Assembly: GCA_964234715.1 (NCBI GenBank)
Contig: OZ174279.1
Strand: one strand, 5' to 3'
Length of the DNA stretch: 64,000 nucleotides
Origin: Podarcis melisellensis
Lineage: Eukaryota
Shown in pieces: positions 3,361 to 61,695 of this stretch. The notes beneath the pieces are model-generated. The model had not been told where the DNA came from, searched no databases, and worked only from the letters and a program-made list of their open reading frames with translations. Position 1 is the first letter of the stretch, and each line of letters starts with the position of its first letter. The position numbers and the translations under genes are program-made.

Positions 3361-3949
3361 CAGTGCCGGATTTACGTATAAGCTAAACAAGGGGTCCCAC
3401 CAAAAAATCTAAAAGAAAAAAATCTGGATACTTCTTAATTGTATTTCAGTTCAACAATTACTTTGATAAAATACATACCGTAGATTCCGGCGTATTAGGC
3501 GACTGGGCATATTAGACGACCCCCCAAATAGGCAGCTGCAATTTGGGCGTTCGTCTTATAAGCCCAGTAGCCTAATACGCTGGGCAGCTCCATGCTGGGA
3601 GAAAGCTGCCCGGCGTGGAGCAGAGCCCGCCACTGGTTGCTGCTGCTTTGGGGCCGCCGCCGCCGTGGGTGGGCTCTGCTCCATGTTGCCCATACTCGGC
3701 GTATAAGATGACCCCCGACTTTTAAACCTCTTTTCTGGGGTTAACAAGTTGTCTTATATGCCAGAATCTACGGTATTTTTAATGTGCAAATGGCTTTAGA
3801 TGCCTATTAGGTCCATAAATTGCCATGTAGCATATATTCAACACAAAAAACCCAGTGTCAATTTGTTGTTGGCAAAGGACAGCTAGACATATAAAGGGCC
3901 CCATTACCTTCAGTAGCTTAGGGCTTCATCAAACCTAAATCTGGCCTTG
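3361..3949. mobile_element. hAT-type MITE interrupted by a nested MITE
   Basis: Termini CAGTGCCGGATTTA / TAAATCTGGCCTTG; degenerate 8-bp TSD ACCACCAG / ACCACTAC (6/8). Confidence 0.75.
3478..3773. mobile_element. Tc1/mariner-superfamily (Tc2/pogo-like) MITE nested in the hAT element
   Basis: TIR CCGTAGATTCCGGCGTAT / ATATGCCAGAATCTACGG; TA duplication at 3476-3477 and 3774-3775; internal copies of the GGCGTATAAGACGAC-like motif. Confidence 0.88.
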
Positions 3950-4818
3950 ACCACTACCATGGGTGGTGAAAATCTGGAGCTTGACTTCCTTTTGGAAGAG
4001 TGATTGCTGGAGACATATGGCATTTTGAAATATTTGATTTATCTACAAATATACAGTACATATAGACCATAGAGAGAGGTGGGAAGCTCCCAGTTTTGGG
4101 ACCAGACGCAGCCTTACAGGGCTTTCTTGTTTGACTTGCTAACCTCTCCCTAGTCCCCAGTCTTCTCAGGCCCATTTCCCGCGCTATTGAACTATTTCCC
4201 GCTGATCAGAGGAGTGGGGTGGGGATGGGATGGGGGAGGTCATTGGAAGGGCTGCTTAGCTGCTTAGTGGAATCACCTCAGAAGGAAAGAAACAAGGAAA
4301 TGGCAGAGTCTCTCTGCAGAGCTACCAATGGAGTTAGTCTGGTTTTCCTGTCCCTTCTTCCTCACTAAAGCTTTCTGTGGCCCCAGAAATGTAAGATATG
4401 GCATAACAATGTAAGATGTGGCATAGAGGACTACAGAAGAAAGGGGGAATTGATGGAAATCAGAGGGCTACCTTCCATGAGCTCAAGAGCATTCTACTTT
4501 CACAAGAGTAGGTTTGGATCCAAACCAAGCTTTTCAATGCCCTGTGTTAATGTTTTCTCTCTCTTCCTCTCTCTCTCCATTTGTAATTTGAAAAATGAAA
4601 AAGAAAAGCATATATTTCAAACCTCCCTATCTTGGATTTTTACATGAACTTAAAGCAGTTTTCATTCCTTCCAGCATTGTTTCCATGTCACTGCACAGAT
4701 CATTAGAACAAGTCAGGTAGAAATATTGACCTTCACGTTCGTTGTTTTGAATTTAAACACATAAATTCTGCAAAATAAAATAAAAATCTTCTGTCTTTTT
4801 TATTCTTTTTTCATTTAG

Positions 4819-4965
4819 CACTTTCAGACCATGTTGAAGACTAAGCTAAATGTCTTAACCCTTCGGAAGGAACCTCTCCCCACAGTGATCTTCCATGAGC
4901 CAGAAGCCATTGAGCTGTGCACCACAACTCCATTAATGAAAACCCGGTCACATGCTGGATGCAAG
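4819..4965 (+). CDS. PID1: PID1 internal coding exon (147 nt, phase 0/0), HFQTMLKTKLNVLTLRKEPLPTVIFHEPEAIELCTTTPLMKTRSHAGCK
   Basis: U-rich tract ending TTAG|CAC at 4818/4819; donor AAG|GTATCT after 4965; 49 codons closely matching the recalled vertebrate PID1 N-terminal region; joins in frame to the exon at 61219. Confidence 0.96.
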
Positions 4966-5404
4966 GTATCTAATAATTCAAAATCCAGGCAACATGCCTG
5001 TTGTGGAAATATTCTGCACCAATAAAGAGACAGTTGAAAAGGGGTGAGAAATTTAAACACCTATAGTATTTAAACAGCAGTATTCAAATATTTGTTCAGG
5101 GTGTTAGATCCAGGCTAAAGTTATGCTTAGAATAGGCCCATTGAGTATCCTAAGTCTTGCTGATTTCATTGGGCCTGCTCTAAGCATGTTATGGGTCTTA
5201 GTCCAACTCATTAACTTCCACAAAATTCAAAACAGAATGTTATTAAATCTCAGAAAAATTTACCGTGAAGCGATCCCTGGACTGGTACGAACCATAATCA
5301 TATCCTCTGTTAGGTTAGGTTTTTATTTTTATTTACTTTAATTTGGCCAGATTCCTCACTGACAGATAAGGAAGCTGGAACCTAAAAATTGTTGACCCCT
5401 TGAA

Positions 5405-5868
5405 TCAGAGGTAGGAAAGTAGATCCAGTCAGTGGGCTGGATTCTAACTTCCCCTACTCCCTGCAGGTCAACTTTTACAGTGTGTGGGATCACTTTCTGG
5501 TCAGTCACACAACATTGCAATGATGTCAAGCAGGTGACACATGTCAGTGTTCTAATGAGATTGCTGAAACTACCGTTCATACAGCAATTTCCTTTGAAGG
5601 TGCGTGATCGGCCACAGGAACGCACCTTCAAAGCGGGTTGTTGTCTCTTCCAAACAGGCATTTGCCAGTTACAAAAAACACCTTTGAAACTTCCATTTTC
5701 CAATGCAGTGCAGCTGATCCCATTGGGGCTCCCTGGGACAGACACTGAGTCCCATAGGATGTCAGGTGTATGGCAGGAGGGGCTGTTTGCGAGGAACAGC
5801 TTCACAAGCCAAATTAGGACCCATTCCAGGCCTAATTGGGTCTGTGGGCCAGAGGTTTCCCATCTAGG
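5405..5868. mobile_element. Old hAT-like non-autonomous element
   Basis: Degenerate termini CAGAGGTAGGAAA / TTTCCCATCTAG with subterminal GGGCTGGATT and GTGGGCCAG motifs like the 2226 element; no clear TSD. Confidence 0.4.
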
Positions 5869-6440
5869 CCTTGAATGACTCTTATTTTAAGAACCACACA
5901 GAATCAATTCTTAGAGGTTGAATCATTTTAAGAAATACACTTATGAATAATAATGATAAAAAATTGGCAGAAACTTAGCATGTTTAAGGTCAGAGGTTGC
6001 AGTCCCTGAGTAGATGGGCTGCGGAAGACATCTCTACCTCAATACCAGGAAAGTTGCTGCTAATCAAGTAGAAAGTGCTGGGCTATGTGGACACAGGTGA
6101 GAGTGAGGTTTCCATCAGTAGAATGGGGAGGGAAGCAATATGCAATGATTCCCCCTCCCTCTGCTCCCCCTGTAAATTTGTTCTGGAGGGCCCTTGAACC
6201 CTTTGGAACAGATTCAGAGGTTTATATGGGAAATGGTCAAATAATGCTTCTCTCTTAGTTCTGCTGATGCAAGCCTTATTGTTAGCTGAGTGTTTGGCTG
6301 CAACCCTTAGCTGTATAAGCGAGTTTCTTGCCCCAATTTTTATCCTTTATCCTAACAAATTTCATTTGGTTGGATCCTTACATTTGCGGGTTCACTCATG
6401 GAATGGAGGGGAATCTTTAGCTCAGTAGGTAAGACTGTTT

Positions 6441-6952
6441 GTAGCTCTGTGGTAGAGTACAGTGGTGCCTCGCAAGACGAAATTAATCCGTTCTGTGAGG
6501 CTCTTTGTATAGCGGTTTTTTCGTCTTGCGAAGCAAGCCCATTGACAGCTTAGCGGATTAGCGCTACAGCTGTCAAGCGGCTCCCAGCGATCAGCTGTTA
6601 AGCGGCTTATCAGCGGAACAGCTGATAAGCGGCTTAGCGGCTTAAGAAAAGGGCGAAAAAAGCGAAAAAAAACCGCGGGGGGATGCAAGATTTTTTTCGT
6701 CTTGCGAAGCAACCCCATAGGGGAATTCGTTTTACGAAGCGCCTCCAAAACGGAAAACCCTTTCGTCTAGCGGGTTTTTCGTCTTGCGAGGCGTTCGTCT
6801 TGCGGGGCACCACTGTACATGCTTTGCATGCAAATAACCCCACATTCAGTTCACAGTATCTCCAGACAGAGCTGTGAAAAAAACTTCTGTCTGAAACCTT
6901 GGTGAACTGTGGCCAATGGTCTGGCTATGCACAAGGCATCTTATATCCTATG
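6441..6952 (+). mobile_element. tRNA-derived SINE with CR1-like tail (Squam2-like, name tentative), split by a MITE
   Basis: GTAGCTCTGTGGTAGAG…[MITE]…CATGCTTTGCATGCA…ATCTCCAG…CTGAAACCTTGG…CCAATGGTCTGG…AAGGCATC is colinear with copies at 36496 and 52207. Confidence 0.6.
6460..6815. mobile_element. Tigger/pogo-like MITE, 356 bp, young
   Basis: 22-bp TIR CAGTGGTGCCTCGCAAGACGAA with 21/22 match; TA duplication at 6458-6459 and 6816-6817; CpG-rich. Confidence 0.92.
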
Positions 6953-9327
6953 AGAGGCAATTTTTACCACTTGCCCCTGCAGCCTCTTTCTCCACAAACA
7001 TCTGCTTTGGAGAACTGGGGATCCTCCAGAACAGAATGGGAGGTGGCACAAAAATTGCAGGGTGATGGGAAAGCTGTCTTTTCTTTGTGAAGGAGTATAT
7101 TGGATATAAGCCACTAACTTGAGTCACCATTTTATTATTGTGTCTTTACTTTCTCTGTCAAAAATAATTTTAAAATCTCACGTATTAATGGGAAAAACAA
7201 TTTATGTGTTTATACAGTCAGCTCTGTTTATAATCTTTAACTCTCCAGAGACAATGTAGCTGTGGGAATAGGATCATGAATTTGTTGAGACTTGTACCGT
7301 CTTAGCAAAAAAGGGCTCTTATGCATTAGCATGTTTGCAGAGTCAAACATACTGTAAAATGTATTGTACCTTCTGCTATTGAACTTGAATTCCACATTAG
7401 CATTCTTCATAATCCACACCCACTTCAGCTGACCACACCCACTTCCTGGCATATGGCCCATTGGAAGTTGTCCAAGGCTGAAAGCAGCCCGCAGACCAAG
7501 AAAGTTAGCCACTTCTGCCCCTAGGAAGTTTTGGCTTATTAACCTTTCCTTCTGGGCCCTTGAATTCTGCACTTTGTGAACTGCTCATTTCTAAGGAGAG
7601 TTATATTTATTGTATGGTTGGGTCCTACTGAGCTTTGATGTTCATGGGGTTCTTAGGATTGAGCATTTCCAGAAGAAAATGTCAGAGGAACTGAACATAT
7701 AAATAGTAAAAGATAAAACAATAGGTGTTTTCGTAGCAAAATATGTTGACCTTGAAATCAGCTACCAAGTTGGGGGTTATCTGTTTCCATTGGGGGAGGT
7801 CTTGAATGATTTCTCAAGCTCAAAACAGTAAACATAACATATTCACTGGCCTGCACCAAGCAATAAAATAACTTTGAGCTATTATGATGGCAACACTGGA
7901 GACCAAGGTGGCTACTGGATACATCATAAAGAAGGAGGTCCAAAATGGTGCCCATTATGGCAGAATGCTTATGTGTGTCTGTCAGAGTAGCTGAGTTTTC
8001 TCTGTGGGTACATATGGATTAGCTAGTTGCCCAATGCTTCAGTCCACACATAGTCATTATACTCTTGTGGTTGTAACCCATCACTATGAGATTGCAGGTG
8101 AACTATGGAACTATCACAGCTACAAAGAGATGAGCCCTCCCCAAAACAGTTTAGCTGTTGATGCTTGACATGAGATGGGTTGGCTCTTGTTTCAAAGCAA
8201 ACTTTAAGCCATATGGTATGGCCAGAGAGATCACTCCAGTCTCAAAGGGGGAGCATTTGTGATAGCCACCAACAGAAGAGATTTGGGATGGGTGGGAAGA
8301 GAAGCAAACCATCATTTAAGTGAAACAAATCATAATCTTTGAGCTACGTCCTGGCATGTTAAAACAGATTAAGGCTTAGCATTTTATTCAAAAGTAGTCA
8401 AAACCTATGTTGTCGAGTTTAGATGCATTTTATGTATGGGATGGTTTGGATCATAAGATTAAGAGCTAACCATGCTATACTTTTTCTGTTTTTGGTACTG
8501 AATCTCCTTTTTATCATGTAGCTAAGTCAACAAGCTTGGCCCTTTCCCCTTGTCTGCAGTTGTTTCCAACTGATGTTTTAAACTCTGTTTTTTGACACTA
8601 GTAGAAGAACAGCACAAGTTACTACGAAGACAAAGATGGCAAAACCTGAACAGTGAAACAGAATATGCCAATTCTCCATGCCCCTATACATAACAAATCT
8701 CCATGCACAATATTCTGATTGGGAAAATGGCCAAGGAGAGAACAGGTGTCTTGGTGTGCCTGTTTGGCTTTGACCAGCATCCTAATTATTTATTGATTTC
8801 CAAAGTGTCAGAATATATTGTGTGAAAATTGCTGGCACAGTTTGTTAATTTTCATTAGAAAACACTTTCCTTCTACTTCAGAGGCACACAATTATATTTA
8901 AATTTGACATTTGAATTTCTTGATATTAAGGTAGCATGCTCCACTTATAATGTTCATGCTAGTTTCTAGCAGTTTCTTTACATTAGACAAGAACTAGCAC
9001 ATACTTACTATAAATAGCAGTGAATAAATTATGGTTTGACTCTGAGCTGCCACCTCAAAAGTGCAGCTTACAGGTTAGATAGTGGTTTTGCATTGTGTCC
9101 CCTTGCACCAGGTCTGGCAATTCACAAAGCTGTTGGCATTTTCCATTAGCACTTCTATACTGGTCTCTTTCCACAATACTCCAAACTGTTTGGATTGTTT
9201 CCAAATAGTTAATCCGCTTGGGAGACTTCTAGAATTACCAGCAACAGACATTGTCAGGATATGCTAGCCCTGTGCTACTCTGACAGCTCAGGTGATGTAG
9301 TGTAAATAGTGTTGACATTCTGTAGAG

Positions 9328-9612
9328 CAGGGAAAGTCAATGTGTTACCCTTCATATATCGTTGGACTCCAGCTTCCATTTTACTTGATCATTCATCATG
9401 CTGGCTGGGCCTGATGGGATCTAGAATCTAGAAAACATATTGACGGCACTACATTTAATTTTCTTTACTTCAGAGCAGGCTGCTTCAAGCTTGAATTCCC
9501 AGATGTTGTTGCATTACTACTCCTATCATCCTCAGTCAGCTTAGCCAGTGGTTGGGGATTATGGGAGTTGTTGTCCAACAATATCTGGAAACCCAAGCTT
9601 AAAGACACTACT
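9328..9612. mobile_element. Two adjacent copies of a ~135-bp palindromic hAT-like MITE
   Basis: Each has the self-complementary core CCAGATGTTGTT…ACTCC(C)ATCATCC…GATGGGAGTTGT…CCAACAA(C)ATCTGG; copies ~9328-9456 and ~9476-9612. Confidence 0.7.
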
Positions 9613-11812
9613 ATAGTGAATGTTTGTCTTGAAATTGCTGATCTGCCATTGAGTACATTGTGCAGGCTTATACAGGTCTTTCAAGCTAACCTACTTCCAC
9701 AGTGGTTGTGAGGGTGAAAACAGCCCCAAGTATGCCGCCATAAGCTCCTCAGTGAAGGGTGCATTGCAAATAAGACAAGTAAGTACTTTGCCATTTCCCC
9801 ACAGTTCGAACAGAAATCAAGATATCATGCTTTCTCCCCTTCCCCTCTCTGAAGTCAGGAACTTGTAGGAATGATTCTTGTGAATTGTTATTTCAAACCA
9901 CTCATTACTCAAATGCAAAATGACAGAGGTTATAAAGGTTGCCTGTAACTTGTGGGGTTGTGTCGCAAGTTTAATACTTTTCTTAAATTCTTCAACGTGA
10001 AACCAGTTCAGTACAGTCAGTGATCAGAGTCAGTTCTTATTTCAGTCAGATGCTTAGTCGTGCTTTTTGAAAAGCAAGTGTTGTTTGTCTTGTTTCTACC
10101 ACACTGCCTGACATCTTCATTTAACTTGGACTGACCCTTCTTTCTTAAGCTTATGATGAATGGTGCTTGCATGGTTCAGGTGACAATCACTCTAGCATAT
10201 AGTTTTGCAAAATGGCACTTGCAATTGTATGGTGGTGCGTCTTCTTAAATTGGAAGATTGCAAACTTCAAGTTTTTATTTCCTCTCAGCTCGACATGTCA
10301 TATTAACTAATTTTGGGAAGCAGCTTATTTTACCATTATTACAATTGAAGTTTTGGATGTGGAATATTATTTCTGTAGCAGGAATTACAATGTTACCCTT
10401 GGAGGGGGAAAAAGACACCCAACCATTACTTTAATTGCTAGCAGCAAAAAAAGCATGAGTTAAAAAAAATTGAACATATTCTGTGCCTACAGAAGACGTT
10501 AACTCTGAACCCAGAGTGTACCTTTAGCTGTACTTACATATCTACATTGCTTAGGATTTACATTAAGTGTGTCATAGCTTTTAAGAAAATCAATCCCACA
10601 TTATAAATAAAATGAATTAATCACTGCACATGGAACACTCCACTTTATATGGAGCTTGACTTCCTCGAATCAAGTACAGTCTTGTTGTGAACTATATCCA
10701 CATTCACTTGGACCAGACTGTTGCATTAATACATTACTGTGTTTGCGTGTTTACTCAACATCTCAAGTTCTTACCATCTCAAGACTTCTCCTTTAATTAC
10801 ACATCCTCACATGGTAAAACTGCCAATGCAATCATTTGACATTCATAGCTGACCTTGTCTGTTTCAGCCACAGTTGGTTAGCTGATGCATGCATTGCTAA
10901 AGCCACTTCCTTTTGTGACTATTGTGCGGTAGCAACCCATTCTCGCCAGTACAGCTGCATTTCACAAAATATGGAAAGCAGCTAGCAAATTCTTTCAAGG
11001 TTCTTTGCCAAGTTGGTAAGTGGTATGGCGGTAAGCTGACCACAACCACTTCCCTTTTCAAAAAGGGTAAATGCAGATTCTAAACAAACAAGGCCCAAAT
11101 TCTCAAATGGAGTGGTTTAAAGGAAGATGATGCAGCAATTTTGCTAAACGTAAGCAGGTCTGAACTGGTTTAGTGCCTGGATGTGAGAATTATATCCATG
11201 CAACCTTGACTTCTTTCAAAGAAAGGCAATGTATGAATGAAATAAATGTTGGTAATGAATCCATAATTTCCTCTTGCCATCTCATTTCTCTTGATTAAAT
11301 GTTGCTGAATTCATTTCACCAATTGACACAGTTCCTTATTCCCAAATTGCATTGCTTGGCTTCCTCTTTCGATGTTTGTGTGTGCTAAAAGAGAAATTTA
11401 CAGACACCTTGAAATCCCCAAACTGTTTTAAGGATAGGCTCATCATAGGGAGATACCTAACAGAATGTGCCTTTGGCCTAGCTGCACAATTTCAGCCTGC
11501 ATAATAGACTTGTTCCAAACATTGCCTTAGCTTTGCCATGAATAATATTGCTTTAACAAGGATGTGAAGGGAGGTATGGATTTCAGAAGATGAGCTATTG
11601 CAAAATTCCAACAGTTTATAATACACAAAAAGCTTTTATACAGTAGCATATCCAAGCAGATTAAGAAGAACACGAATGGTATTAAGTGCTTTCAAAGAAG
11701 GCAAGCGGAATGTGGATACTCACTGTTCGCCAGTGATTCCTTCCTTAACCAAAAGACCTTTGCACAGATAGTGATTGCAAAGTCCTGGTAAGAAGAGGTA
11801 CCTGACCACTTC

Positions 11813-11945: not shown

Positions 11946-13440
11946 GAACTACATCAGCAGTCCTCAACACAATGATATTTGGTCACCTGAAGAATAGCAA
12001 AAGGAATGAAAAAGGCAAGTGAAAGGTTAGAGGCAGAAACTCCCTGGATCCAGCTATAAGTGGAGAAATTAGGTCAAAGAGTTTGGCTGTGGAACACCCA
12101 GTGATGTGTACCATGATGGCATGAGTATAGGGGTGAATACTGTTATGTATCCCACCTACACTTCAAATGATGTGCACTGTAATCATATGTCAAGCTGGCA
12201 TCAATGGTGTTGAGAAATGGGAAGACATTTTCAGTCATGTCATGGAGACAGGAGACCGGTATATCTGTGTCTCCATAGCTTTAGAAAAGCTAATAGTCTC
12301 CAAAAATTGGAATGAACAATACATATGTGATTGTCCTGAAATGAAAATGAATCATTGAATGCAGAGCAGCTGCCAAGTCAACAAGCATCCATGTCTCACT
12401 CAACAGAATAGCTAGTTTATCATCTCCAAATCTTGGAGAGAGCTGTGTCATATGCCGATTTACTTATTTCATGCTTAGGATGATCTGTGAAACCAAAAGA
12501 AGCTTGTTCTGTGAATGGATGCAAAAATAGATACATACAATAAGAATGAAAAGAGGAGAACATTATTGGATTAGGACATCATGATAAGATAATTAGTCTT
12601 CAGGGAAGAAATCTCAGCTTTTCAGTACTGAACTACAGTGTTGGAAAAGTTTAACTGAGCCAGCTGAATTCATAGTAAGGAGACCACAGTGTGCGTATCA
12701 GGCTGCATATACACCATACATCAATATGTACTATTATACATGCATCTTTACAGCAGGTTAGCCCTTTAGTCTGCAGTTGCTGATAATTCAGTGCTGTTGT
12801 TCTTTTTGTGCAACAGACTGTCATTCCAACAGCTACAGAATGAAAACCAAATCTATAACTTTTGAACTAAATATATATTGGTAAAATGTTTTCAATCACT
12901 GTAAATGCAAATGGCTATATTGTTTGAATACAGGAGCATTTTACTTCATGGGAGCAGCAATTGAAGTTAGGAAGAAAGGAACTTCCAAAGTTCCTTTGCA
13001 AATGTGAAATAGTGAGTGGCCCAAGGGTATTAAGTAATTTAGTAGCCAGGTGACATTGTTGTGGCTGATATTCAGGTATATTGATGTTCCTGGTATGTTG
13101 TCAGCATCATAGTAAAGGGAATTTAGAGCCAGTTAATCCTTACAGTGTCCTCCATAATCCAGAGAGATTCTGTTTCTCTTGTAATCCAACATTACTGTTT
13201 CAACAACTGGGTGCTACCTGATGTAGAGTTCTGGTATATTTGTGTGAAGGTATTTGGTAACCCAGATCTTAAACGTGTTGCAATATAATCACTACAAGAA
13301 GAAAAATATATGCTAAGAACTGAGTTTGGCATTGTACATTTAGATACAACATTGCACACAACATTGTTACTTGCTCCACTTTCATTTGCAGGGTCTCATT
13401 TGCATGTGGGGATCTGAACCTGATCTCATGCTCTGAGAGC

Positions 13441-16700: not shown

Positions 16701-18862
16701 CCCTTCTTTTTCTCATTTCTCAGCATACCAGCATAATTGTAGAGTGAAGATGAATGTGTTCACATGCTTTCCACATAACTGGAGCTACCTCTTGATGGGA
16801 TGGGACCGTGCTATTTTTGATGAGTTACAGCAGTTTTGACAGTTTGAGCCGAGGACGTAGGGCCTGAGAACTGAATCTAACTTGCTAAGCCTTTCCCTCC
16901 TAGAAAAGCTTCCCTTTGCTTTTCTGGAATGACATGTCCACAAGTGAGCTGTTGCACAAGAGCAGGGTGAGGCTTTGCTTGGTGGGAATAGCCTTGGTGA
17001 GTTTCCAATTTCCCATGGTCCTGCATTGCCTGTTTTTGAGTTTTGGCCAAAGTGTGCAGTGATGAGCATATCATATTTGCCCCGTGATTGTGAGACAATT
17101 CAAGTGGCATTAAAGAAATTCTGATTCTTGAAAAACGAGAAAGGTGAATCATCTGTTAAAGCACATAAATGTCATATGAACTGATGCAGCTCTCTTGCCT
17201 TCAGCAGCACTTGGGCCTGTTTATGGGAGCAGTAAATATGTGGACAAAGAGTTGTGTATAAATATAGTCGCCTTGCAACGCGCACACATTTAACTTGCAT
17301 GATTGCAGCTTTATGTGCTTGGCAGCTGACCAGCTGATATCACAGAAGTTAAACGCATGCAAGGCGCAGAGCTTAAAAGCTCTTTCCTGGTGTGGAAAGC
17401 ACTTTTAAGCTCTCAATCTTGCTTACCAGGCTCTAACTCTGGGAGGATCCCATGAGATCTTGTGAGAGCCTTCCAGAGCCCAGTAAGCAAGACAAAAAGC
17501 TTAAAAGCTCTCCACCATGTGTGTTGGGGCAGAGGCCAAGGCCTGCTTGGCACAATGGCTTTGGAAAGGTAGGGATGGTCACATGGGGGCAATTCCAAAG
17601 TTAAAACAATTTTGGCTTTATACACTATCCTCTGGAACATAACCCTTGCATTAGTTGCAATCCCACTGTACTGGATTTACACAGCAGGGTTTATTGGTTC
17701 TCTTCCTGTAACAGCTGTGTTCCTTCTAAGTTTTTCTTACCCACAAGATTCCAAAACTATGGGAAACCTCAAAAGAGAAAGGTTTGGGATTTTGTTGACC
17801 TAAAGGCTAGTACACACCCAGGGGTTTTTAGTGGCCCTAGATTCAGTTAATAGTATTGTAAGTGTTTGGGGAGAGACATAGCTCATTACTTCAGTAATTA
17901 AGTGTTTTGGGGTTTTTTTTGTTTTTTTAAAGGGCCCAGGTTCAGTCTCTTGCATTAGCAGCTTCAAGGATTAGGGTGCAGCTAATATGGAATACCTCAC
18001 CGTACTGCAAACCCAGGAGAACTGCCATTCATAGTACAGAATACTGTACAGTGCTAGATAGATGTACAGTCTGACTTTGTGACCTGTGTTTCTTGTTTGA
18101 GATATATTCCTTCATTGATTGTGGAACTGCTAGTAGGCTAAACTAACTGGGGTAATAAATGTGATAACAAGCTTGCTTAATTATCTAGTTCTCATTTATT
18201 CACCCGCAGAGTTTTTAAAATGTATGGTAATGGGTATCCCTAAATGTTGCACTGTTCTTGAGATTAATGGAGCATGCCATCTCAGTAGCATTTGATAATT
18301 ACTATAGTTCTTAGGTTTGGGGTATGATCAGTAAGCATGCTGTCAAGGCCAAGAAAGCATTCCTTAGCCAGGGTCTGTATTTGGAACTGAAAAGGCATAG
18401 ACTGGCTCTTGTTTGGATGTTAAAGAATTCAATAATGTATAAACTCAGTGTTAGTGGCACATCTGTTGTCAGATGTCTATGTTGCTGAAACATTTTCCAG
18501 TTTTTATTTAAATCTAGATTTTGCCCAACGTATTGAAGTGATGAATAATGAGTTTCAGTTTTTTAAGAAGAACACAAGGATCAAACAAAAGAGAAAGGCG
18601 TTTTCAGATGTGATTAGCTAGTGACAGAGTACCATTATTATCCTGTGAATATGTTATGGTGTAGTAAACTATATATCTTGCTTGAGATCACAGAGGAAAA
18701 TACCCAGCTATTTGCTTGTGTCTGTCTGCTAACATCTTAGATGATGTCATGTCTATTGTTTCTAATGTCTTCTAAAATATCTGTAAAATACTTTGCAGGT
18801 ACTTATTCAGTGATTAACGGTCAACATAGAAATACCACTTGGCAAGTAGAACAGTAATTAGG

Positions 18863-33165: not shown

Positions 33166-35009
33166 TTTGTCTCATGGACTTGTGTTTACGCTAACTTCCA
33201 AATCCCTGCACCATGCAGGAAGGAGATCACAGAATTTCCATTTCATCAGTTTTATTGACACACAGGAATTATGTTTCATATTTGCACTGATTGACAGAAT
33301 AAGCTTTGGAAATTGCATGTTTTTCGTAGTCCTCCCCCCCTCCCCCATTCTGAGCCATTAGTGCTGGGAAATCCACAGGAATCTCCATTTGCTGCACTGT
33401 GCAATCATGTTGCTCTTACTGATGAGCATACATATGGCTCTTATTCCTTCTTATTTATGCTTCTTAGATGTGAAACATAATTCTGTCCTGCCAAGACCTT
33501 AGGTCTGTGCTGAAATGACTAACCAAACAGACACAAAAAGTTTATAAATTCCAAGAAGTGAAAAGCAACCAGCACAAATTTAGGATCGTTTCTTGATTAG
33601 GCAAAGTTGAAGTACTTTTAAATCTCAAAAACATTTTTTTTAATTGATAAAGGAGGGTTCCGCATCTTCCAAGTACAATTTACTTCAAGTAACAGCAAAC
33701 ATCTTGGTTTGTGCTCAATTTAATTTGGCTGGATTGAGCCCATTGATTCTAGTTATATCTCCGAAACAGAAGAGATGGCCAACTTTACTTAACCATGCAG
33801 TTTTTGACAGCTAATGAACTACTGAAAGACTTTCTTGGACATGGTTCCATTGATGTCTCAAAGTTTCCTGTAGTGTTTGATTTAAGATCTAAGTCCTATT
33901 AAGCAAACTAAGGCTGCCAGTCTCCTCCAAACCAGTAATCCCTGCAAATGCAGTAATTTCCATTCCTCTTCAAAACCCCAACTAATAATACTTGCAGGTA
34001 TAGTTAATAATGCAAGAAAAACTCACTCCTTTTTTTTAGTGCAGCAGTTATGAATAATCATGGTCACATTGAAGATCTAACTTGCAGTTCCTAGTCACAT
34101 TTAAAATAGCTGCCATATGGATTGTGGGGGGGAAATGCAGATGGAATTAGTTGTACATGAGTGGCAAGACTGCTGTAGGTGGAAGCTTGCCTGCGTCAAT
34201 CTTTAATCTAATGTTTGACCAGGAGATGACAGAAAAATAAAGCAGCATATTCTGTGTGGGCACTATACTGAGCTTGGTTGGAGCATAAAGCCTTGTTACG
34301 TGTCCACCAGCACAATGTAAATATTTAAAGGTCCCCGTTGGACAGAGAGTTGTTTAAGAGCCTTCTGTTTGTAATCATTCGTTAAAGTAAACGTTTCTTA
34401 TTATACATGGAGCTGTGGTAGGTTTCTGCACTTAAAAGCTTGGCTGAAAAGCTGAAGTCATGTGCTGTTCTTTGAGTACATTATCATCCTCCCATGTAGA
34501 TGAGTCTCTCCTGCTTTCTATATTAGCAAATTCTGTCATACAGGGCCATCCCTATCTAGACTCCAAAAGTCTACCATCTTCTCTGATATGGGCACAAATT
34601 ATTTGTGACTGTTAGGAACCCAGCCTTCTGCCCTTAAATTCTTGAGCAGTTTCCTGAAGCAGAACCCAAACAGAAGCAAGGGAAATGTGAAATAAATGGG
34701 TCAAAAAGCCTAAAGGGAAGTGAAGCTTGGGCTGATTTGGGAAACAGAAAGAAGGAAGAGGCAAAGGAGTGTTTGAGGGTTGAGTGCCCAGGGGAAGGAA
34801 AGGGAGCAAATGAAACTGTAGCTAGAGGTAAGGTGAGCAATGGAAGGGATGGGATGAAGATGCAGAGAGTCTGAAGGATGAGAACTGGACTAAGTGGCAA
34901 CTAAAAAAAGTCAAAGCTAAGCAAGCGTGTTGCCTTCATTTTTTACCGCCATCTTATACTGAGTTAGCACCTTTAAAATGCATTCTCTATAAACACAACA
35001 TTTAAACTA

Positions 35010-35395
35010 CTGGACCATAAAGAAGGCTGATCGCTGAAGAATTGATGCTTTTGAATTATGGTGATGGAGGAGACTCTTGAGAGTCCCATGGACTGCAAGA
35101 AGATCAAACCTATCCATTCTGAAGGAAATCAGCCCTGAGTGCTCACTGGAAGGACATGTCCTGAAGCTGAGGCTCCAATACTTTGGCACCTCATGAGAAG
35201 AGAAGACTCCCTGGAAAAGACCCTGATATTGGGAAAGATGGAGGGCACAAGGAGAAGGGGACGACAGAGGATGAGATGGTTGGACAGTGTTCTCGAAGCT
35301 ACCACTGCGGGAGGCAGTGGAAGACAGGAGTGCCTGGCGTGCTCTGGTCCATGGGGTCATGAAGAGTTGGACACCACTAAATGACTAAACAACAA
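35010..35395 (+). mobile_element. BovB (RTE) LINE 3' fragment
   Basis: WTIKKAD…RIDAFELW…RRLLRVPWTARRSNLSILKEISPECSLEG…HLMRREDSLEKTLILGKMEGTRRRGRQRMRWLD; 3' end GTCCATGGGGTCATGAAGAGTTGGACAC…ACTAAACAACAA. Confidence 0.95.
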
Positions 35396-53406: not shown

Positions 53407-54239
53407 TCCCTACAGCAGGAAAACATTAAGGTCCTCTCCCTGGACATCTTCCTCCACTGGCAAGTATCAGCTTTGGGAAAGTGCTTTTCATAGGGAAACT
53501 GCTCTGGAGAACAAAGGGCTAGCTTTTTACCCCAACACTGTGATCCTGATTAGATTTGCCACCTATTAAAATATTCTATTTGCTATTTTTTTTATATAAA
53601 GCCTGGGAAAATGAAAATACTGGAACTGCTGTTGCATCCAGTTCGACCCTTAGTGTGTGCATTAAGTCTCTGTTACTCACAAGAGACTAGTGGTTCAGTG
53701 CCTCTTTCTATGGACTCAGCTAGACTGGTAAAGAAAAAGCGATTTATATGTGTTGTATTGTGATATAACATTGTGCCACCAGATGGCGACATGGAGTCCT
53801 GTCTGTCTCTAACTGTTTTCCCTGTTTAAATTCACAACACTTTAAACGCTTCTTTGATGTGTCTAGATCCAGCCTATATGTAGTGATTGCCTTTGGGATA
53901 ATTTCATGGGAAAAGTTATGCAGGTGTTGCAAATAATAGGTGGGAACCACTGGCACAAACAGGTGGAATCTGTGGCAGCCGCATACAGAACAGGAGGGTC
54001 TGTGGGCCAGGTTATTTAAAATTTTAATCAGAACTTTAGGAAAGACTCACTGGGGATCATGGGAATTAAAAACTACAGAAAAGCAGAGTTTAAAGCAAGA
54101 GTCTAAAAGCAGCAGAGAAAACATTTAAGATAGCTTCCCAGAACTTAAAACCATTTCACCAAAATCCTGCTCAAAAAGGAAAGTCTTATATTGTGGTTAG
54201 AGGCCAATAGAGTGGTCAGCAAGGCAGGCTTCTCTTAGG

Positions 54240-54400
54240 ACTTTTAGAAGTCCTAAGGGAAGCTTTTAATGTTTAATAGATTATTGTAGTTTAATATTCT
54301 GTTGGAAGCTGCCCAGAGTGGCTGGGGAAACCCAGCTAGATGGGTGGGTATAAATTAATTATTATTATTATTATTATTATTAATAATAATAATAATAATT
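54240..54400 (+). mobile_element. L2 3' fragment with an (ATT)n(AAT)n tail
   Basis: GGAAGCTGCCCAGAGTGGCTGGGGAAACCCAGCTAGATGGGTGGGTATAAAT as at ~1320 and ~23490. Confidence 0.8.
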
Positions 54401-57400
54401 AGAGGGTGTGCTAAAGCCTAGTCACAGCTTCTGAAAAGGTATCTGAGGCATTTTGGAGACACACAAGAGACTCTGAAAGGTCAGAATAAAGAGGCATGAT
54501 TCACAGTCAGGTCTGTCTTCTAGCCTCTCTTAGTTATGTTCTGCTGAGAGCTCAGCAGTATGGAAGCAAAACCACATGAACCCACAAACTCTTCACATAT
54601 TACTTGCATGGACATGTAAAGTACATAGAATGCATCTTCTGGGCTATACCTCTGCCCCCATCCCCAATGATGTGTAACTGCCTCCTCTGCTGTCCACATA
54701 TTAGCATGGGTGACAAAAACAGGAAGGCCTACAGATGTAGGCTTCCCCACATCCTGGAACTCAGTCATGCAGGGTTCCATGACCCTAGAGTAGTCTTCTC
54801 AAAGGCTTCCTCTCCTTCTCAGATGGTGGGATGGGGCAGCGAGAGTGGAGAGCCATGCATGAGCAATAATCTTTACCAAAGGACCCCCCTTCGCCTCTAC
54901 CAGTGGGACTTGGGGTAGGCGCCCTCAAAATTGTAGGCCTTTGCCTATGAGCCCCCTCTGCCCCCCAAGTTCTGACCTGTGTATGAGTGGTGGTAGGGCC
55001 AAGGGTGCAGCCTCACAGTCCCTTTCCACACCCTTTGCCTTTTCACGTGAGTAATGCAAAAAGGAGGCCACAGAAATGCTACATAGGTATTGTAGTGTGA
55101 GTTACGTCACCCTCTGTTTGTCAAACGTATTGCAAACAGGTTGATTTTGATGCATAAATCATGTTATTGTTTAAATTAATAGCAAATTCTCATTGATTTC
55201 ATTTAGGTTGAAATTTTTCTCTAAGTCTCTGTAAGCCAAATAGCCTTTTCACCAGTCCTGCTGAAAAAGAACAACAACAAAAGCTCTAGATACTGCAGTC
55301 TTTTTGCAGATTGCACCTTGAGTCAAATATTCATACTCTGTTACAAGGTTTACATGAGAAATGAAATCTTCCTTGACATGGATTTTGCTTTCCCCCTAAA
55401 GGTTAGCATATTCACATGCACCTAATAACTATTAATAGTTGAAAGTGCAGCTGTGTTTGAGATCATTGTAGAAGCTTGCCAGTAGGGAAAAGACTTGGAT
55501 AGAAAATCCTATTTGACAGGAGAAAAGAATATAGACAACTTTAGTATGCCAGGAAAGTTGCGTCTGATGCCTTCTTTTTACACACCCTTTGAAAAACTAT
55601 ATGGAGATCTCAACCTACTACAGCATATAATAAAGCAATATTTTTATATGTGGAGAATAGTGTGATAATAAAAAGCTCTTTATTACTGAAATTTAATAAA
55701 ATGCTGTTTAGGTGTGCCCCCTCAGCCTCCTATATCATATGACACCTATCATCTACTAAACCTACTAAGAGATGATATAATAGACAAATCATGTCTCAGA
55801 GTCTCAAAAAAGTCAGTGAGAGGTTCACCCAAATGAAAGTGGATCAGTGAGTTCGCCCACATGAAATTGGCATTGGTTGTACACCAAGACTGATGACTAG
55901 GACTTTATACTGGATCTCTTTTTGAGAAGTGTGATACAAAACAAAGCAGTCCACCGTCACCACTGATTATCCTACTCCGTTGAATTATGACTTGTGGTTC
56001 CAACAGTACCATTAGGCAGAGAGATTGCTGGGGAGGGAAACAATGGGATCATCTAGATATTCCCATTCTCTTGAGCTGCTGCCCCAGCATCAACACCAAT
56101 GGCTTGTTGCTGGCCTGTGCTAGCTGGCTCAGCGAGTTTTCTCCCAATGCATCACCATCAGCACTGTTGCAGAGGAGAAATCTTGGCTGAGTGGGCAGGC
56201 AGATGCACAGGCTACCCACTCCAGCTGGCATGCCCTGTCTTGCTTGGCTCATCTGACACACACGGCCATCATGTCTGCATTGCAGCATTTGTTGGAGGGA
56301 GCAGGGGTCAGGAGGAGTGGGAAGTCACTGATGGCAAGGTGCTGGAAAGCAGAGCTGTATGTGCCATGCAACCTGCCCTATGCTTTCCAGCTCATATGCT
56401 GCATTTGAGTGTGGATGAGGATGCTGTCTGGTTACCCAAAGTGAAAGCAGATTCAACTGCCGGTCTGAGCGGTTAGTGTATGTGGGATGGAGAAGGGAAA
56501 CAACTTATTTTCCTTCTTCTCAGGCAGCAAAGTGTATTGCAAGGGCTCTGATTTTATATATATATATAGCTTCCCCACAACTGGATTGCCTTGTGCAATT
56601 GCTTGTCACACTGAACCAAACACCTGTGGGTGTTGAGGAAATGGATATCATACACTTCGGATGATTCTTCTACCTGGTGACTATTAAATTGTACAGGTTT
56701 CTGTCGTTTTTACTGGTTTTGAAGAATTAATCTTGCTAAAACGCAGCTCTCAATGTTATTTTATGGTGTGTTGATAGAATATATGTATAACACATGGATA
56801 TTTTATGTGTTTTGTGCTTTTAAAAAAGTATTCCCTCGCTATATGAAATTCATGAGTTGTAAGAACAAAGCATTACAGAAATCAGCAATGGTGGCTTATA
56901 AAATGCTAGCAGCCTCATACTTGGCACTGCTTGGGAATTCTAAGAAACCAAAATAAAACATAGAAATCAGTGAAATTTTGGAAGCCTCTGTCCACAGGGA
57001 TTCAAAATGGCTTCCAATCGCAGGTAAACATAGACCAAAACCTGCTCTTGGGAACAGGTGCATGCAGTCAGAGAGCAGCATGGATCTGTTTGAATGCCTT
57101 CTTGCAAACAGTCCTGGACTTCCCTTTACAGAGGTAATGTGCCTCTCATTTGGCTAAGTACAATCTGAACGGGGATAGACTTCACATATTAAGGCTTGTG
57201 TTTGTGTACAAAATAACAATGACAAGTGGGGTAAAAAAGCTTTATTTTTCTGTCTGTTGTATAGTATAGAAAATAAAAATATTGCTACTTCAGAACAGGA
57301 GTTTGCTTGGGTTCTTGAAGCAATGAGGTTGGGTTACTAAAAAATTGGGGCCTGGCAAACCATAAATAAAAACAAATATTTTATTTTAAATAGTAGTGAT

Positions 57401-57735: not shown

Positions 57736-60034
57736 TATGGAATATACAAGTATATAGCCAGAATTGTATATAGAACCTCCAGGTTCAGAGACTGTCTCCC
57801 TCTAAATAATCTAAATAACCTGAAGTTGTGGAGGCTAACAACAGGAAAGGAAAGGGCTTTGGGTCTCAAACCCTGCTTTGTTTAAACACGTTTAAAAGGG
57901 TGTGCAAGCCAATGGCCAGCACCACATGATTTGCTGTGTGAAGAAATTATTTCACTTTTGATCCTACTGCTCCCTTTCAATTTCACTGGAAGACCCATAT
58001 TTCTGATGTTAGAGAAATGATAAAAATCTGTGGTAACATGCAAACGCTTGCAACTTGTAATTTCTTATGTACTCAATCTGTGTCGTGCCATATTCAGAAT
58101 TAAGTCCCACTATGTTCAGTGTAAGAGCCGTAGGCTGCATAAGATAGCCCAAATGTTTCTTGTTTATATTTCAGAATTTTGAAACTCTTCAGGCTTTTTT
58201 TGTAGCCCACAAAACCTTATGCCTTAATAAATGTTTTAGTCTGTTAAGATACCTCAAGACTAATTTTGTGGTACTGTATTTCATGTGCTCCTTTTGGGGA
58301 GAAGCTGCCTTATTTTGGCGATTGTACCAGCGGGCCCCACCACCTTAATCTGGCCTTGCTTCTGAGGGCTGAGTCCTCCATGGTCAACAATTGTCATGGA
58401 TTTCAGAGAAGGCTTCCAATGCATACTGCTGTTTGTGGTATCAAACTTCTTTTGGGTAACTCGTGTAAGAATGAAATGTATTGGATTGGCTCTGCAGAGA
58501 ATAAGCTGAAGGTTACAAACATGGCAGTTTATAGATTTATCTTATTTTCTAAACTATAGACTCGGAAACTTACAACAACTTCAGCATCTGTGAGACTGTG
58601 CAGAGGGGGCAGGAAGGGAACTGCTTGAACTCTTGGTAACACCATATGGAACACCGTATGGAAACTTAATTGATTAGAGTAGCGATAGGAACTAAAAATC
58701 CAGAGCCTTGTTAACAATTTTAGCTGTTGCAGTTCCCTGTGTTGTCCCAAATGTAAGATGCTTATGGGTGTGACGTTACAGAAGGCTTCTTAAGGCTTTT
58801 CATTTTGTGATTTCCTTGCATTTTGGCAGAGAGGGAATGAACCAGGATGGATTTCCAATAATATTTTGTAAGCTTATTCTTAATTATTTGGGTCTCTGAG
58901 TGTGACACGAACAACTCCTGCAGAAACTCTGAGAGTTGTTTTCATGCTGAGTCCTTGCATGTTACATTAGTATTTAATGATTTTGCACAATGTAAACACA
59001 TTGCTGTTCAAAGCTATTTTTATAATGAGGAACTTTTTAAAGCCAAAAAATAGAAAAGGAAAATTTATAGTGAACTCTTGCAGCAGTTAGTTGCTTGGGA
59101 TGTGGAAAAGTAGACCCCATAAAAAAGAGTAGCAGTACATCTATGGACCAATCCAAACATTATGCTAATTACATGAATGCAATTAATGTGCACATTTTTA
59201 ATATAGTAGCCTCTTTCTGCTTCTGCTGTGGTCTGACAAAAATTGCTTCTCCAATAATGTTGTTTGCCTTTCAGGGGATTTTTTTCAGGGACATAAAAAT
59301 CCCCCTCCTCTGCCCTAATGGTCCTAAAACAACTCCAGCATCACAAAGGCTGCTGTTTACTTAACCCAAAAAAACACATTAACTGCACAATTATAGTGTC
59401 ATGTTTGGTTCAAAGCTATAGCCTGGCAAATCGTATTCGCGACGGGACAACGAAGAGTGAGGCCGCGTGGCTGGCGCAGCAGCGATTTACGCTGTCATCC
59501 ACACCCCTTTGAAGGCACCTGGTTGGGTGCCTGCCCGTGGGCGTGGTGCGCCAGCCAGGTGAGTAGGAGGCAGGGGGCTAATGCCCCCTGCTTGAGGCGG
59601 AGACCGGCTCCCGCCCACAACCACTCCCCTCTTTTGCAGGAGGAGAGTCTTTGTAACTCATTGTTAAAGAATATGATTTCAAAATTTGGCCAAGACTGGA
59701 TCCGTAAATGATGCCAACCACTTCCCACCAGCACAAACCTCTTCCAGAGATGAAGCAGAACTCTTGGCCATGCATGTATCTCTGTGCCCAGCTCCTGTTC
59801 TATCTATACCATTCTCTTTCACCCTTTTTGACCCTCGCTCCTCCAGCACTAGCTATGGCTCTACGTATTTCCTTTCCACTTTGCTTTCAAAACTCCCAGT
59901 GAACTCTGTCATATGCAGCATCTGCTGCTACTTCACTGTTTCCCCTAAGATTATGGCACCCTAAAGCAACTACTTAGGTCGACTTTGTAACTAACTAGTT
60001 ACAAACTATATATTTTAGAGTTGTGAACTGGACT

Positions 60035-60100
60035 GTAGTAGTAGTGGTAGTGGTAGTGGTAGTGGTAGTGGTAGCGGTAGTAGTAGTAGTAGTAGTTGTA
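60035..60100. repeat. (GTA)/(GTAGTG)n compound microsatellite, probably the tail of a minus-strand L2 end (60100-60132)
   Basis: Repeat seen directly; adjacent ACCCTGCCCATCTGG is the reverse of the L2 terminus. Confidence 0.8.
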
Positions 60101-60199
60101 GGAATAATTTATTTCTACCCTGCCCATCTGGTTATTTTTACAGATCATATTTTAATTTGAGATGTTGAAAAAGACAATACAATGTACATAATAATAATT

Positions 60200-60390
60200 A
60201 TTAGCATCTGTAGAGCACTTTTAACATCATTCTGTGGTTTTTATAACAACCCTGTGAAGCGGATGAGTATCATCCCCATATTGTTGAGACTGAAAGAGAG
60301 CAGTTTGCCAGAGACCCGCCTAATGGGTTTCTACCTGGTGGTAGAGACAAGAACCGAACCACGAGCGTTCAGATTTGCAGCTCTTTGTAG
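60200..60390 (-). mobile_element. Old CORE/MIR-like SINE
   Basis: ACAACCCTGTGAAG…ATCATCCCCATATTG…GACTGAAAGAGAG, typical of the antisense CORE domain. Confidence 0.55.
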
Positions 60391-61218
60391 CTAGTATAGG
60401 CATTACCTCTGAACACCGTATACCAGCATGAATAGGAACCATAGAGCTGTGTATGCCATTCCTGCTTGCTCTGAGCTGCCCACGTTGAGTGAGAAGCTTT
60501 GAAGGGGGTCTCTATGTGTGTTTGACTATCTTCAAACCTTCCCACTCAGTGCCTCCTACTTTGATTAGGATTCCCTGTTCCAGCATAATGCCTGACTAAG
60601 CATGTCTCAGGCTGCAGTCCTAAAACACTTCCCAAGTAAGTGCAAGCCCTCTTGAACTCATTGAGCCTTGCTTCTGATTAAACATGCACAACATTGTATA
60701 ATTAACTCACTGTGTTACATCAGTTCACTTGGAATGTATTATTTTAGCACTATTACAGGAATAAAATTTGAGAGCTAGTAGGAACAGAGTGCTTATCTTC
60801 TGTTGTACTTCTACATTTAGAAGCAATCATTGGAAGATAGGCAGACGTAAGTTCAGATTTGAAAATGCTGCTTCAGATCTTTGTATTCTTGTATGATACA
60901 TACATAAGTCTAATTGGAAGACAAAATAGGCACATTTTGATCATTGCGAAACTAATATGGATGTACTCAGTAGCTGAATATTCAGCTTTTTAATAGAATT
61001 GTCAGGTGATGCAATATTTGGATGTATTGTGACTTCAGTAGTTCTAATTCAATGTCAAGTAGACTTTGAAAATCCCAAGCTAAAAGTTCCTTGAGCTGAG
61101 ATAGGTCTACAATTTTCAAGTGATGCTATTGGTGTTCTGTGTAAAGCTCACATGTTGAAATTGAAATTCCAAAGACTTCTGTTGACAAACTTTATTTCCT
61201 TTCTATCTCTTTTCTTAG

Positions 61219-61695
61219 GTTACATATTTGGGTAAAGTTTCCACAACAGGGATGCAGTTTTTGTCAGGTTGCACGGAAAAACCAGTCATTGAGTTGTGGA
61301 AGAAGCACACGCTTGCCAGAGAGGACATCTTCTCAGCTAATGCCCTTCTGGAAATCCGCCCCTTCCAAGTTTGGCTTCATCATCTGGACCTCAAAGGAGA
61401 GGCCACTATCCACATGGATACCTTTCAAGTTGCACGTATTGCTTACTGCACTGCCGACCACAATGTCAGCCCAAACATTTTTGCTTGGGTTTATCGGGAG
61501 ATCAACGATGATTTGTCCTACCAAATGGACTGCCATGCCGTAGAGTGCGAGAGCAAGTTAGAGGCCAAGAAGTTGGCTCATGCCATGATGGAGGCCTTTA
61601 AGAAGACTTTCCATAGCATGAAGAGTGATGGACGGATCCACAGGAATAGCTCATCTGAAGAAATGTCTCAAGAATTGGAATCTGACGACGGCTGA
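61219..61695 (+). CDS. PID1: PID1 terminal coding exon (PTB/PID domain), VTYLGKVSTTGMQFLSGCTEKPV...QELESDDG*
   Basis: Acceptor TTTTCTTAG|GTT at 61218/61219; 158 codons plus TGA (61693-61695); PTB-type motifs VxYLG, RIAYCTAD, IFAWVYRE, CHAVEC. With 49 aa from the upstream exon and the recalled 10-aa first exon this totals 217 aa. Confidence 0.98.
   Translation, partial: VTYLGKVSTTGMQFLSGCTEKPVIELWKKHTLAREDIFSANALLEIRPFQVWLHHLDLKGEATIHMDTFQVARIAYCTADHNVSPNIFAWVYREINDDLSYQMDCHAVECESKLEAKKLAHAMMEAFKKTFHSMKSDGRIHRNSSSEEMSQELESDDG

Follow-up and report, generated by a model that had tools for sequence, protein, structure and literature searches.

Is the dense nest of helices predicted in the last intron of a lizard PID1 gene an RNA that its host has adopted, or is it a property of the DNA that happened to land there? 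The 64,000-nt stretch of Podarcis melisellensis DNA analysed here, contig OZ174279.1, is referred to as the window. Its positions 59468-59615 (hereafter the module, together with the adjoining repeat sequence) had been proposed to form a three-way junction and two hairpins, and to act as a structured ncRNA or as an RNA domain of a retroelement, with a possible role in gating splicing.

The module folds strongly on both strands

The helices P1 to P4 and the hairpin behind them lie where the original prediction had put them. They can be read in the letters, and RNAfold reproduces them in its MFE structure. The elements are listed below; all are taken from RNAfold, except hairpin 2, which was read directly from the sequence.

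59468-59557, both strands: three-way junction (RNAfold MFE and shuffles)
59468-59478/59547-59557: P1, 11 bp, perfect
59479-59484/59490-59495: P2, 5 bp plus a closing G59479-U59495 pair
59499-59506/59539-59546: P3, with the mismatch A59503/C59542, the only one in this helix
59513-59520/59525-59532: P4, 8 bp in the fold
59568-59593: hairpin 1, with a 4-nt loop and 9 perfect pairs rich in G/C, extended to 11 in the fold
59596-59615: hairpin 2, bulged and weak, GGCGGAG/CTCCCGCC

Hairpin 1, formerly drawn at 59570-59591, extends to 11 bp at 59568-59593 in RNAfold. Against dinucleotide shuffles, the whole of 59468-59615 reached z scores of -5.2 on the plus strand and -6.8 on the minus strand. The three-way junction by itself gave -5.95 and -6.25, respectively, and hairpin 1 by itself -5.4. 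Hairpin 2 is present as described, but its stability did not exceed chance (z -1.3, equalled by 24 of 200 shuffles), and the fold of the whole region pairs its bases differently. A weak terminal hairpin at 59623-59648 was likewise no better than chance (z -1.65).

The helices are almost purely Watson-Crick, and both strands fold equally well. Judged by these predicted folds, either RNA or DNA may be the relevant form. In composition, the module is a GC- and CpG-rich island of ~210 nt within CpG-poor, AT-rich DNA, with 10 CpG in 59400-59499 and, as read from the letters, GC-box-like motifs on its minus strand.

The claim that the module matched no recognisable ncRNA was borne out by Rfam 15, from which nothing reached the gathering score in the whole window. 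The best match over the module, at a threshold of E up to 10, was the bacterial rmf motif with 19 bits (gathering 45) and E 1.4, a chance match. The absence of a hammerhead core was also confirmed, and there was no Rfam hammerhead match in or beside the module. Hammerhead and other ribozymes, U1-like snRNA, 7SL, 5S, vault and the other Rfam small RNAs were rejected for want of an Rfam match; the U1 likeness of the minus strand is simply the complement of the donor consensus.

The module is a copy of an interspersed repeat

Contigs of four public runs were aligned to 58700-61260. X14 is a DNA run from a related lizard, organism I. X15, X18 and X19 showed zero depth over most of the intron together with a spliced junction into the last exon, and were therefore taken as RNA runs. 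The evidence on the repeat family consists of contig depths and majority letters from one such alignment. Two features follow from it.

59438-59649, plus strand: interspersed-repeat copy, given as the extent of the insertion, with family likeness up to 59652 (contig depth and a single-copy contig)
59620-59648, plus strand: pyrimidine tract plus AG and the weak terminal hairpin, where the repeat is at its most abundant and best conserved

The depth of X14 over the module, taken in four bins, was 252, 3468, 9988 and 215, versus about 9 in the flanks. It stood at about 3,500-10,000 over 59474-59645 and at about 12,000-13,000 over 59614-59638, where few variants are listed. In total, 370 contigs of this run match the module with 85-100% likeness: 30 at 99% or more, 91 at 95-99%, 175 at 90-95% and 74 under 90%. 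Beyond 59652/59653 the loose ends vary from contig to contig and from run to run (agreement 0.63), which shows copies with unique flanks, interspersed rather than tandem; no joints in the module contigs turn back on themselves. The module is thus very probably one copy, 212-215 nt long, of an interspersed repeat that is rich in CpG and dense in hairpins and numbers several hundred to about a thousand copies in related lacertid genomes.

No second copy was found within the window. The two longest frames across the module, 59457-59708 on the plus strand and 59498-59734 on the minus strand, had no relatives in a protein word index and contained no Pfam domain. An exact 20-mer from the best conserved part gave four metagenome contigs, in which the likeness covers 20-22 bases only and is ascribed to chance, and no match in viral contigs; a 19-mer spanning P1 and the donor gave none in viral contigs either. 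Snippets of the module were not found in full-text papers, and a topical literature search returned nothing useful.

Separately, a query with the 22-nt hairpin showed that the 24-nt GC-rich hairpin of 59570-59593 recurs in three near-identical phage contigs (L005 4470-4493, L006 3331-3354 and L007 1983-2006), where the likeness to the module stops at 24 bases. In their AT-rich context the phage copies look like an intrinsic terminator, and the match is a mere coincidence of a short palindrome.

Several repeat classes could be set aside from the build of the copy. A satellite monomer was rejected because the copies lie in unique flanks, and an rDNA spacer because they are diverged and interspersed. 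There is no tRNA-like sequence as in the head of a tRNA-derived SINE and no CTRR terminus as in a Helitron end. The insert starts with CG and ends with TC (TTT), has no TG..CA and no target duplication, and is therefore not a solo LTR. An intact MITE or cut-and-paste transposon was rejected since no inverted repeat links the ends of 59438-59652 and no duplication flanks them.

A related lizard has no module at the orthologous site

A contig of organism I, 1012 nt long and at single-copy depth (8.85), runs through 58909-59437, then through 61 other letters, and then through 59650-60029. The module, 59438-59649, is absent from this orthologous site, indicating a lineage-specific insertion of the repeat. 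Most likely, the insertion took place in the lineage of the present sequence and replaced about 61 bases; a deletion in organism I is the less likely direction. Of the two identities originally offered for the module, the mobile-element one is supported in its general sense by the many copies and the empty orthologous site, whereas that of an ncRNA gene found no support, with no Rfam match and an unconserved position. As the insertion differs between related species, it could possibly serve as a phylogenetic or population marker.

Near this site, a 10-nt direct repeat (CTTTGTAACT) occurs at 59649-59658, adjoining the 3' end of the module, and at 59983-59992, where it sits in a palindrome (TTGTAACTAACTAGTTACAA). 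The pair may be an old target duplication or may be due to chance.

The fold is a property of the repeat family

The letters of the PID1 copy were compared with the family majority. At 59503, in P3, the majority has G (1036 of 1060 in depth, 18 contigs) where the PID1 copy has A, and G restores a G-C pair. At 59495 the majority has C (171 of 171, 11 contigs) where this copy has T, and C turns the closing G-U of P2 into G-C. Since the majority letters at both positions restore pairs, the fold is one that the repeat brought with it, and the PID1 copy is losing it. In the loop of hairpin 1, at 59582, the majority also has C (4272 of 4687 in depth), and the CpG has decayed to TpG here. Both 59503 and 59582 are CpG sites in the family majority that have decayed in the PID1 copy. 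The nested helices were accordingly inherited from the repeat family rather than shaped at the PID1 locus, where the fold is slowly decaying, partly through loss of CpG.

Homologues lacking compensatory changes had been named as a refutation of the proposal; here, both substitutions of the PID1 copy in predicted pairs, 59495 and 59503, weaken the pairing with no listed compensating change, two sites being a small sample. A shorter variant of the family keeps both arms of P1 without P2-P4, and one copy is without 59564-59604. Positions 59593-59605 and 59614, in the loop and stem of hairpin 2, vary among the copies with no clear compensatory pattern.

Strong folds are common in the window

A sliding fold scan of the whole window, with windows of 150 nt and a correction for GC content, put the strongest excess folds at 3426-3650, 6426-6950, 9451-9625, 17276-17550 and 54176-54475. 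Among the 25 strongest windows listed per strand, none starts within 59401-59650. Several other repeat-derived stretches match or exceed the fold of the module relative to GC content, so a strong fold is not rare in this genome; it mostly marks repeats. In a lizard genome as rich in repeats as this one, a very low folding energy is an unreliable indicator of functional RNA.

The scan also drew attention to some of these stretches in their own right. One of them, at about 6461-6816, is MITE-like: terminal inverted repeats (CAGTGGTGCCTCGCAAGACG... / ...CGTCTTGCGGGGCACCACTG) enclose an interior rich in CpG, and its excess fold ranks with the strongest in the window. The CpG-rich stretch 3426-3650 has the top GC-corrected excess fold on the plus strand (z about -6) and is probably another repeat with long inverted arms. 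The very strong excess folds at 54176-54475, which is AT-rich and has no CpG, and at 17276-17550, which is stronger on the minus strand, are likely long inverted repeats. The module has no likeness to any of the other folding modules of the window.

The insertion may be the tail of a truncated retroelement

How did the repeat reach this site? The depth of the contigs climbs towards a sharp end at 59652 (about 600, then 3468, then 9988), a gradient that could equally reflect unequal conservation along the repeat. Because a sharp common end is combined with rising abundance, the pattern of a 5'-truncated retro-copy is preferred. We infer that the module is the tail of a 5'-truncated retroelement in plus orientation, which is the most likely reading and to which we assign a probability of about 0.5. 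The plus strand would be the sense strand of the element, either the 3' region of a LINE, a SINE-like partner, or a Penelope-like element, and the repeat presumably moves through RNA. The copy would have been made by target-primed reverse transcription with deletion of target DNA and would be 5'-truncated. The chain of hairpins beside the sharp 3' end may be the kind of 3' RNA structure that is recognised by the reverse transcriptases of stringent-type LINEs. A target deletion such as the one of 61 bases is a known by-product of target-primed reverse transcription during LINE integration. The copy ends in ...GAGTC(TTT), with no poly(A), microsatellite or short-repeat tail; the flanks share no direct repeat that would be a target-site duplication; and neither a linked reverse-transcriptase ORF nor a tRNA-, 7SL- or 5S-derived head was found, which a truncated copy may simply lack.

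The main alternative, possible but less likely, is that the module is an interior piece of a non-autonomous DNA transposon made of chained hairpins, left as break-filler DNA or by an abortive or rearranged insertion. Its helices would then be inverted repeats of the DNA and have no RNA role, which agrees with the nearly pure Watson-Crick pairing and the equal folding of both strands. The MITE at about 6461-6816, with its clear terminal inverted repeats and strongly folding CpG-rich interior, shows such an element in the same window, and 61 replaced letters with no target duplication would fit a repair patch. However, the insert has neither terminal inverted repeats nor a target duplication and is unlike the other folding modules of the window, and a single sharp end from which the depth declines is what a retro-copy leaves, not the two-ended pattern of cut-and-paste transposition.

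Splice-like motifs travel with the repeat

The module lies in the last intron of PID1, in sense orientation and 1.6 kb upstream of the last exon. Two features are needed here.

61219-61695, plus strand: last coding exon of PID1, the host gene (PTB/PID domain), beginning in phase 0 behind the acceptor AG (61217-61218)
59556-59564, plus strand: 5' splice-site-like 9-mer CAG/GTGAGT, from the sequence

Within the last coding exon, the plus-strand ORF 61228-61695 matches Pfam PF14719 (PID_2, E 7e-18), and the protein encoded by 61219-61695 is one that we take to be PID1. P1 had been said to end one base before a splice donor, and this is correct: P1 closes with 59557, G59558 is the last exon-like base, and the GT lies at 59559-59560. 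An acceptor-like pyrimidine tract ends in AG at 59638-59639, and the two motifs outline an intron-like unit of 81 nt. The plus frame that is open from 59457 completes a codon at 59558 and is in phase with the last exon, which begins in phase 0. With the insertion, the exon that encodes the PTB domain of PID1 has acquired strong splice signals on the sense strand, 1.6 kb upstream of it.

The RNA runs bear on whether these signals are used. In X15, X18 and X19, from three species, the PID1 contigs pass from the upstream coding exon straight into 61217. Across 58700-61260 just two joints are listed, both in DNA and neither at 59558, and no joint from the donor 59558/59559 occurs in the three RNA runs, which come from other species, at least one of them without the insert. 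The insertion may be absent from all three RNA species, as was shown for organism I only, and their regular PID1 splicing is therefore weak evidence on animals that carry it. The module stretch itself appears as RNA in no RNA run. In transcribed copies of the repeat elsewhere (X15 record 8, 2431 nt; X19 records 15-18), the 81-nt intron-like segment is still present. The proposal that the module gates splicing found no support, given that the upstream PID1 exon is joined straight to the last exon, that there is no joint at 59558/59559 and that the 81 bases are retained in transcribed copies. The splice-like motifs travel with the repeat, and there is no sign of their use in PID1 or in transcribed copies.

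Among the more far-reaching readings, we regard as improbable that the module represents an undescribed lacertid family of retroelements or SINE-like elements, with a head derived from neither tRNA, 7SL nor 5S, whose RNA would carry a conserved three-way junction abutting a perfect U1-binding motif. Such an RNA would recruit U1 or hide the site by folding, and the PID1 copy would occasionally give a truncated isoform in carriers.

Very improbable is an alternative first exon or promoter adopted by the host, with transcription beginning in the CpG-rich module and a short PID1 isoform arising from splicing of the donor 59558/59559 to 61219. It draws on the consensus donor, the open frame from 59457 in phase with the last exon, the CpG-rich stretch and the GC-box-like motifs of the minus strand. 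Against it, that frame has no ATG inside the module and being in frame is a 1-in-3 chance, the stretch is in no RNA run and the three RNA runs have no 59558 joint, and transcribed family copies keep the 81-nt part (X15 record 8; X19 records 15 and 16). A conserved PID1 exon is excluded, since organism I has no module at the orthologous site; the module also has no ATG.

Finally, it is scarcely credible that host selection maintains a structured RNA here, whether an ncRNA gene or an intronic switch in which P1 hides or exposes the donor. In its favour are the high stability of the fold (z -5 to -7), the position of P1, which stops one base short of the donor-like motif, and the retention of the P1 arms even in the shortened family variant; against it, the sequence is multi-copy, lineage-specific at PID1 and absent from the orthologous site, has no Rfam match even at E up to 10, carries uncompensated substitutions at 59495 and 59503 that weaken the fold, and has a structure that is not strand-specific and is comparable to folds common in the repeats of the window.

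The PID1 insertion is an ordinary mobile-element fragment in an intron and matters little as it stands.

Just downstream of the module, RNA contigs of the three related species lie on a single-copy, pyrimidine-rich piece, 59704-59909 (X15 59715-59863, X18 59704-59896, X19 59727-59909), with 1-5 other letters and no splice joints. This piece is unstructured (z +1.7 and +2.4). No other part of the examined intron stretch has RNA contigs this close to identity; what is covered there is repeat-like, at the module and at 60644-60685. The piece 59704-59909 may be a low-level unannotated transcript, or an intron piece that is stable even where the module is absent. Further downstream, 60030-60109 is a (GTA/GTG)n microsatellite, which was skipped as a repeat in the contig alignment.

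Comparison with known systems

The leader of a retrovirus or LTR element, with its primer-binding site, major splice donor and packaging hairpins, resembles the module in its order of parts, a multi-helix region, a consensus splice donor and then short GC-rich hairpins, and one family-majority loop has a CCGG palindrome. Unlike such a leader, the module is flanked by single-copy orthologous intron with no adjoining LTR, and no primer-binding site was recognised. Moreover, the repeat family ends 90 bases after the donor instead of continuing into gag, and the depth pattern does not fit.

Hairpin-chain DNA transposons, represented in the window by the MITE at 6461-6816, share with the module a CpG-rich and many-copy character, GC-rich inverted repeats and a strand-symmetric fold. 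The module differs from them in that terminal inverted repeats and a target duplication are absent, and its sequence is unlike the window examples.

Penelope-like elements are common in lizards; they bear hammerheads, retain introns, are often 5'-truncated and have no poly(A) tail. The module is like them in having an intron-like segment and no poly(A) tail, whereas it has no hammerhead, and no RT or GIY-YIG ORF lies nearby.

In its sequence, the module is presumably unlike the Sauria SINE and the tails of CR1 and Bov-B. Elsewhere in the window, the minus-strand open frame 35007-35360 has a translation that appears to resemble the Bov-B/Bov-A type of retroelement, known from ruminants and squamates.

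Stringent-type LINEs and their partner SINEs have 3'-terminal stem-loops, as in eel UnaL2/UnaSINE1 and in CR1/L2-type elements. The module departs from their tails in that it lacks short repeats or poly(A) at its end, a target duplication and a linked RT ORF, and its recognition by a reverse transcriptase is putative. As in these elements, the insertion has no inverted ends and conserved hairpins lie in the last 100-200 bases; many copies also stop sharply at 59652, with a contig depth that grows in that direction, whether through 5' truncation or through unequal conservation. This unclassified lacertid repeat has an unusual build, combining a junction, a consensus donor, hairpins and a sharp end, and could merit classification from a full assembly.
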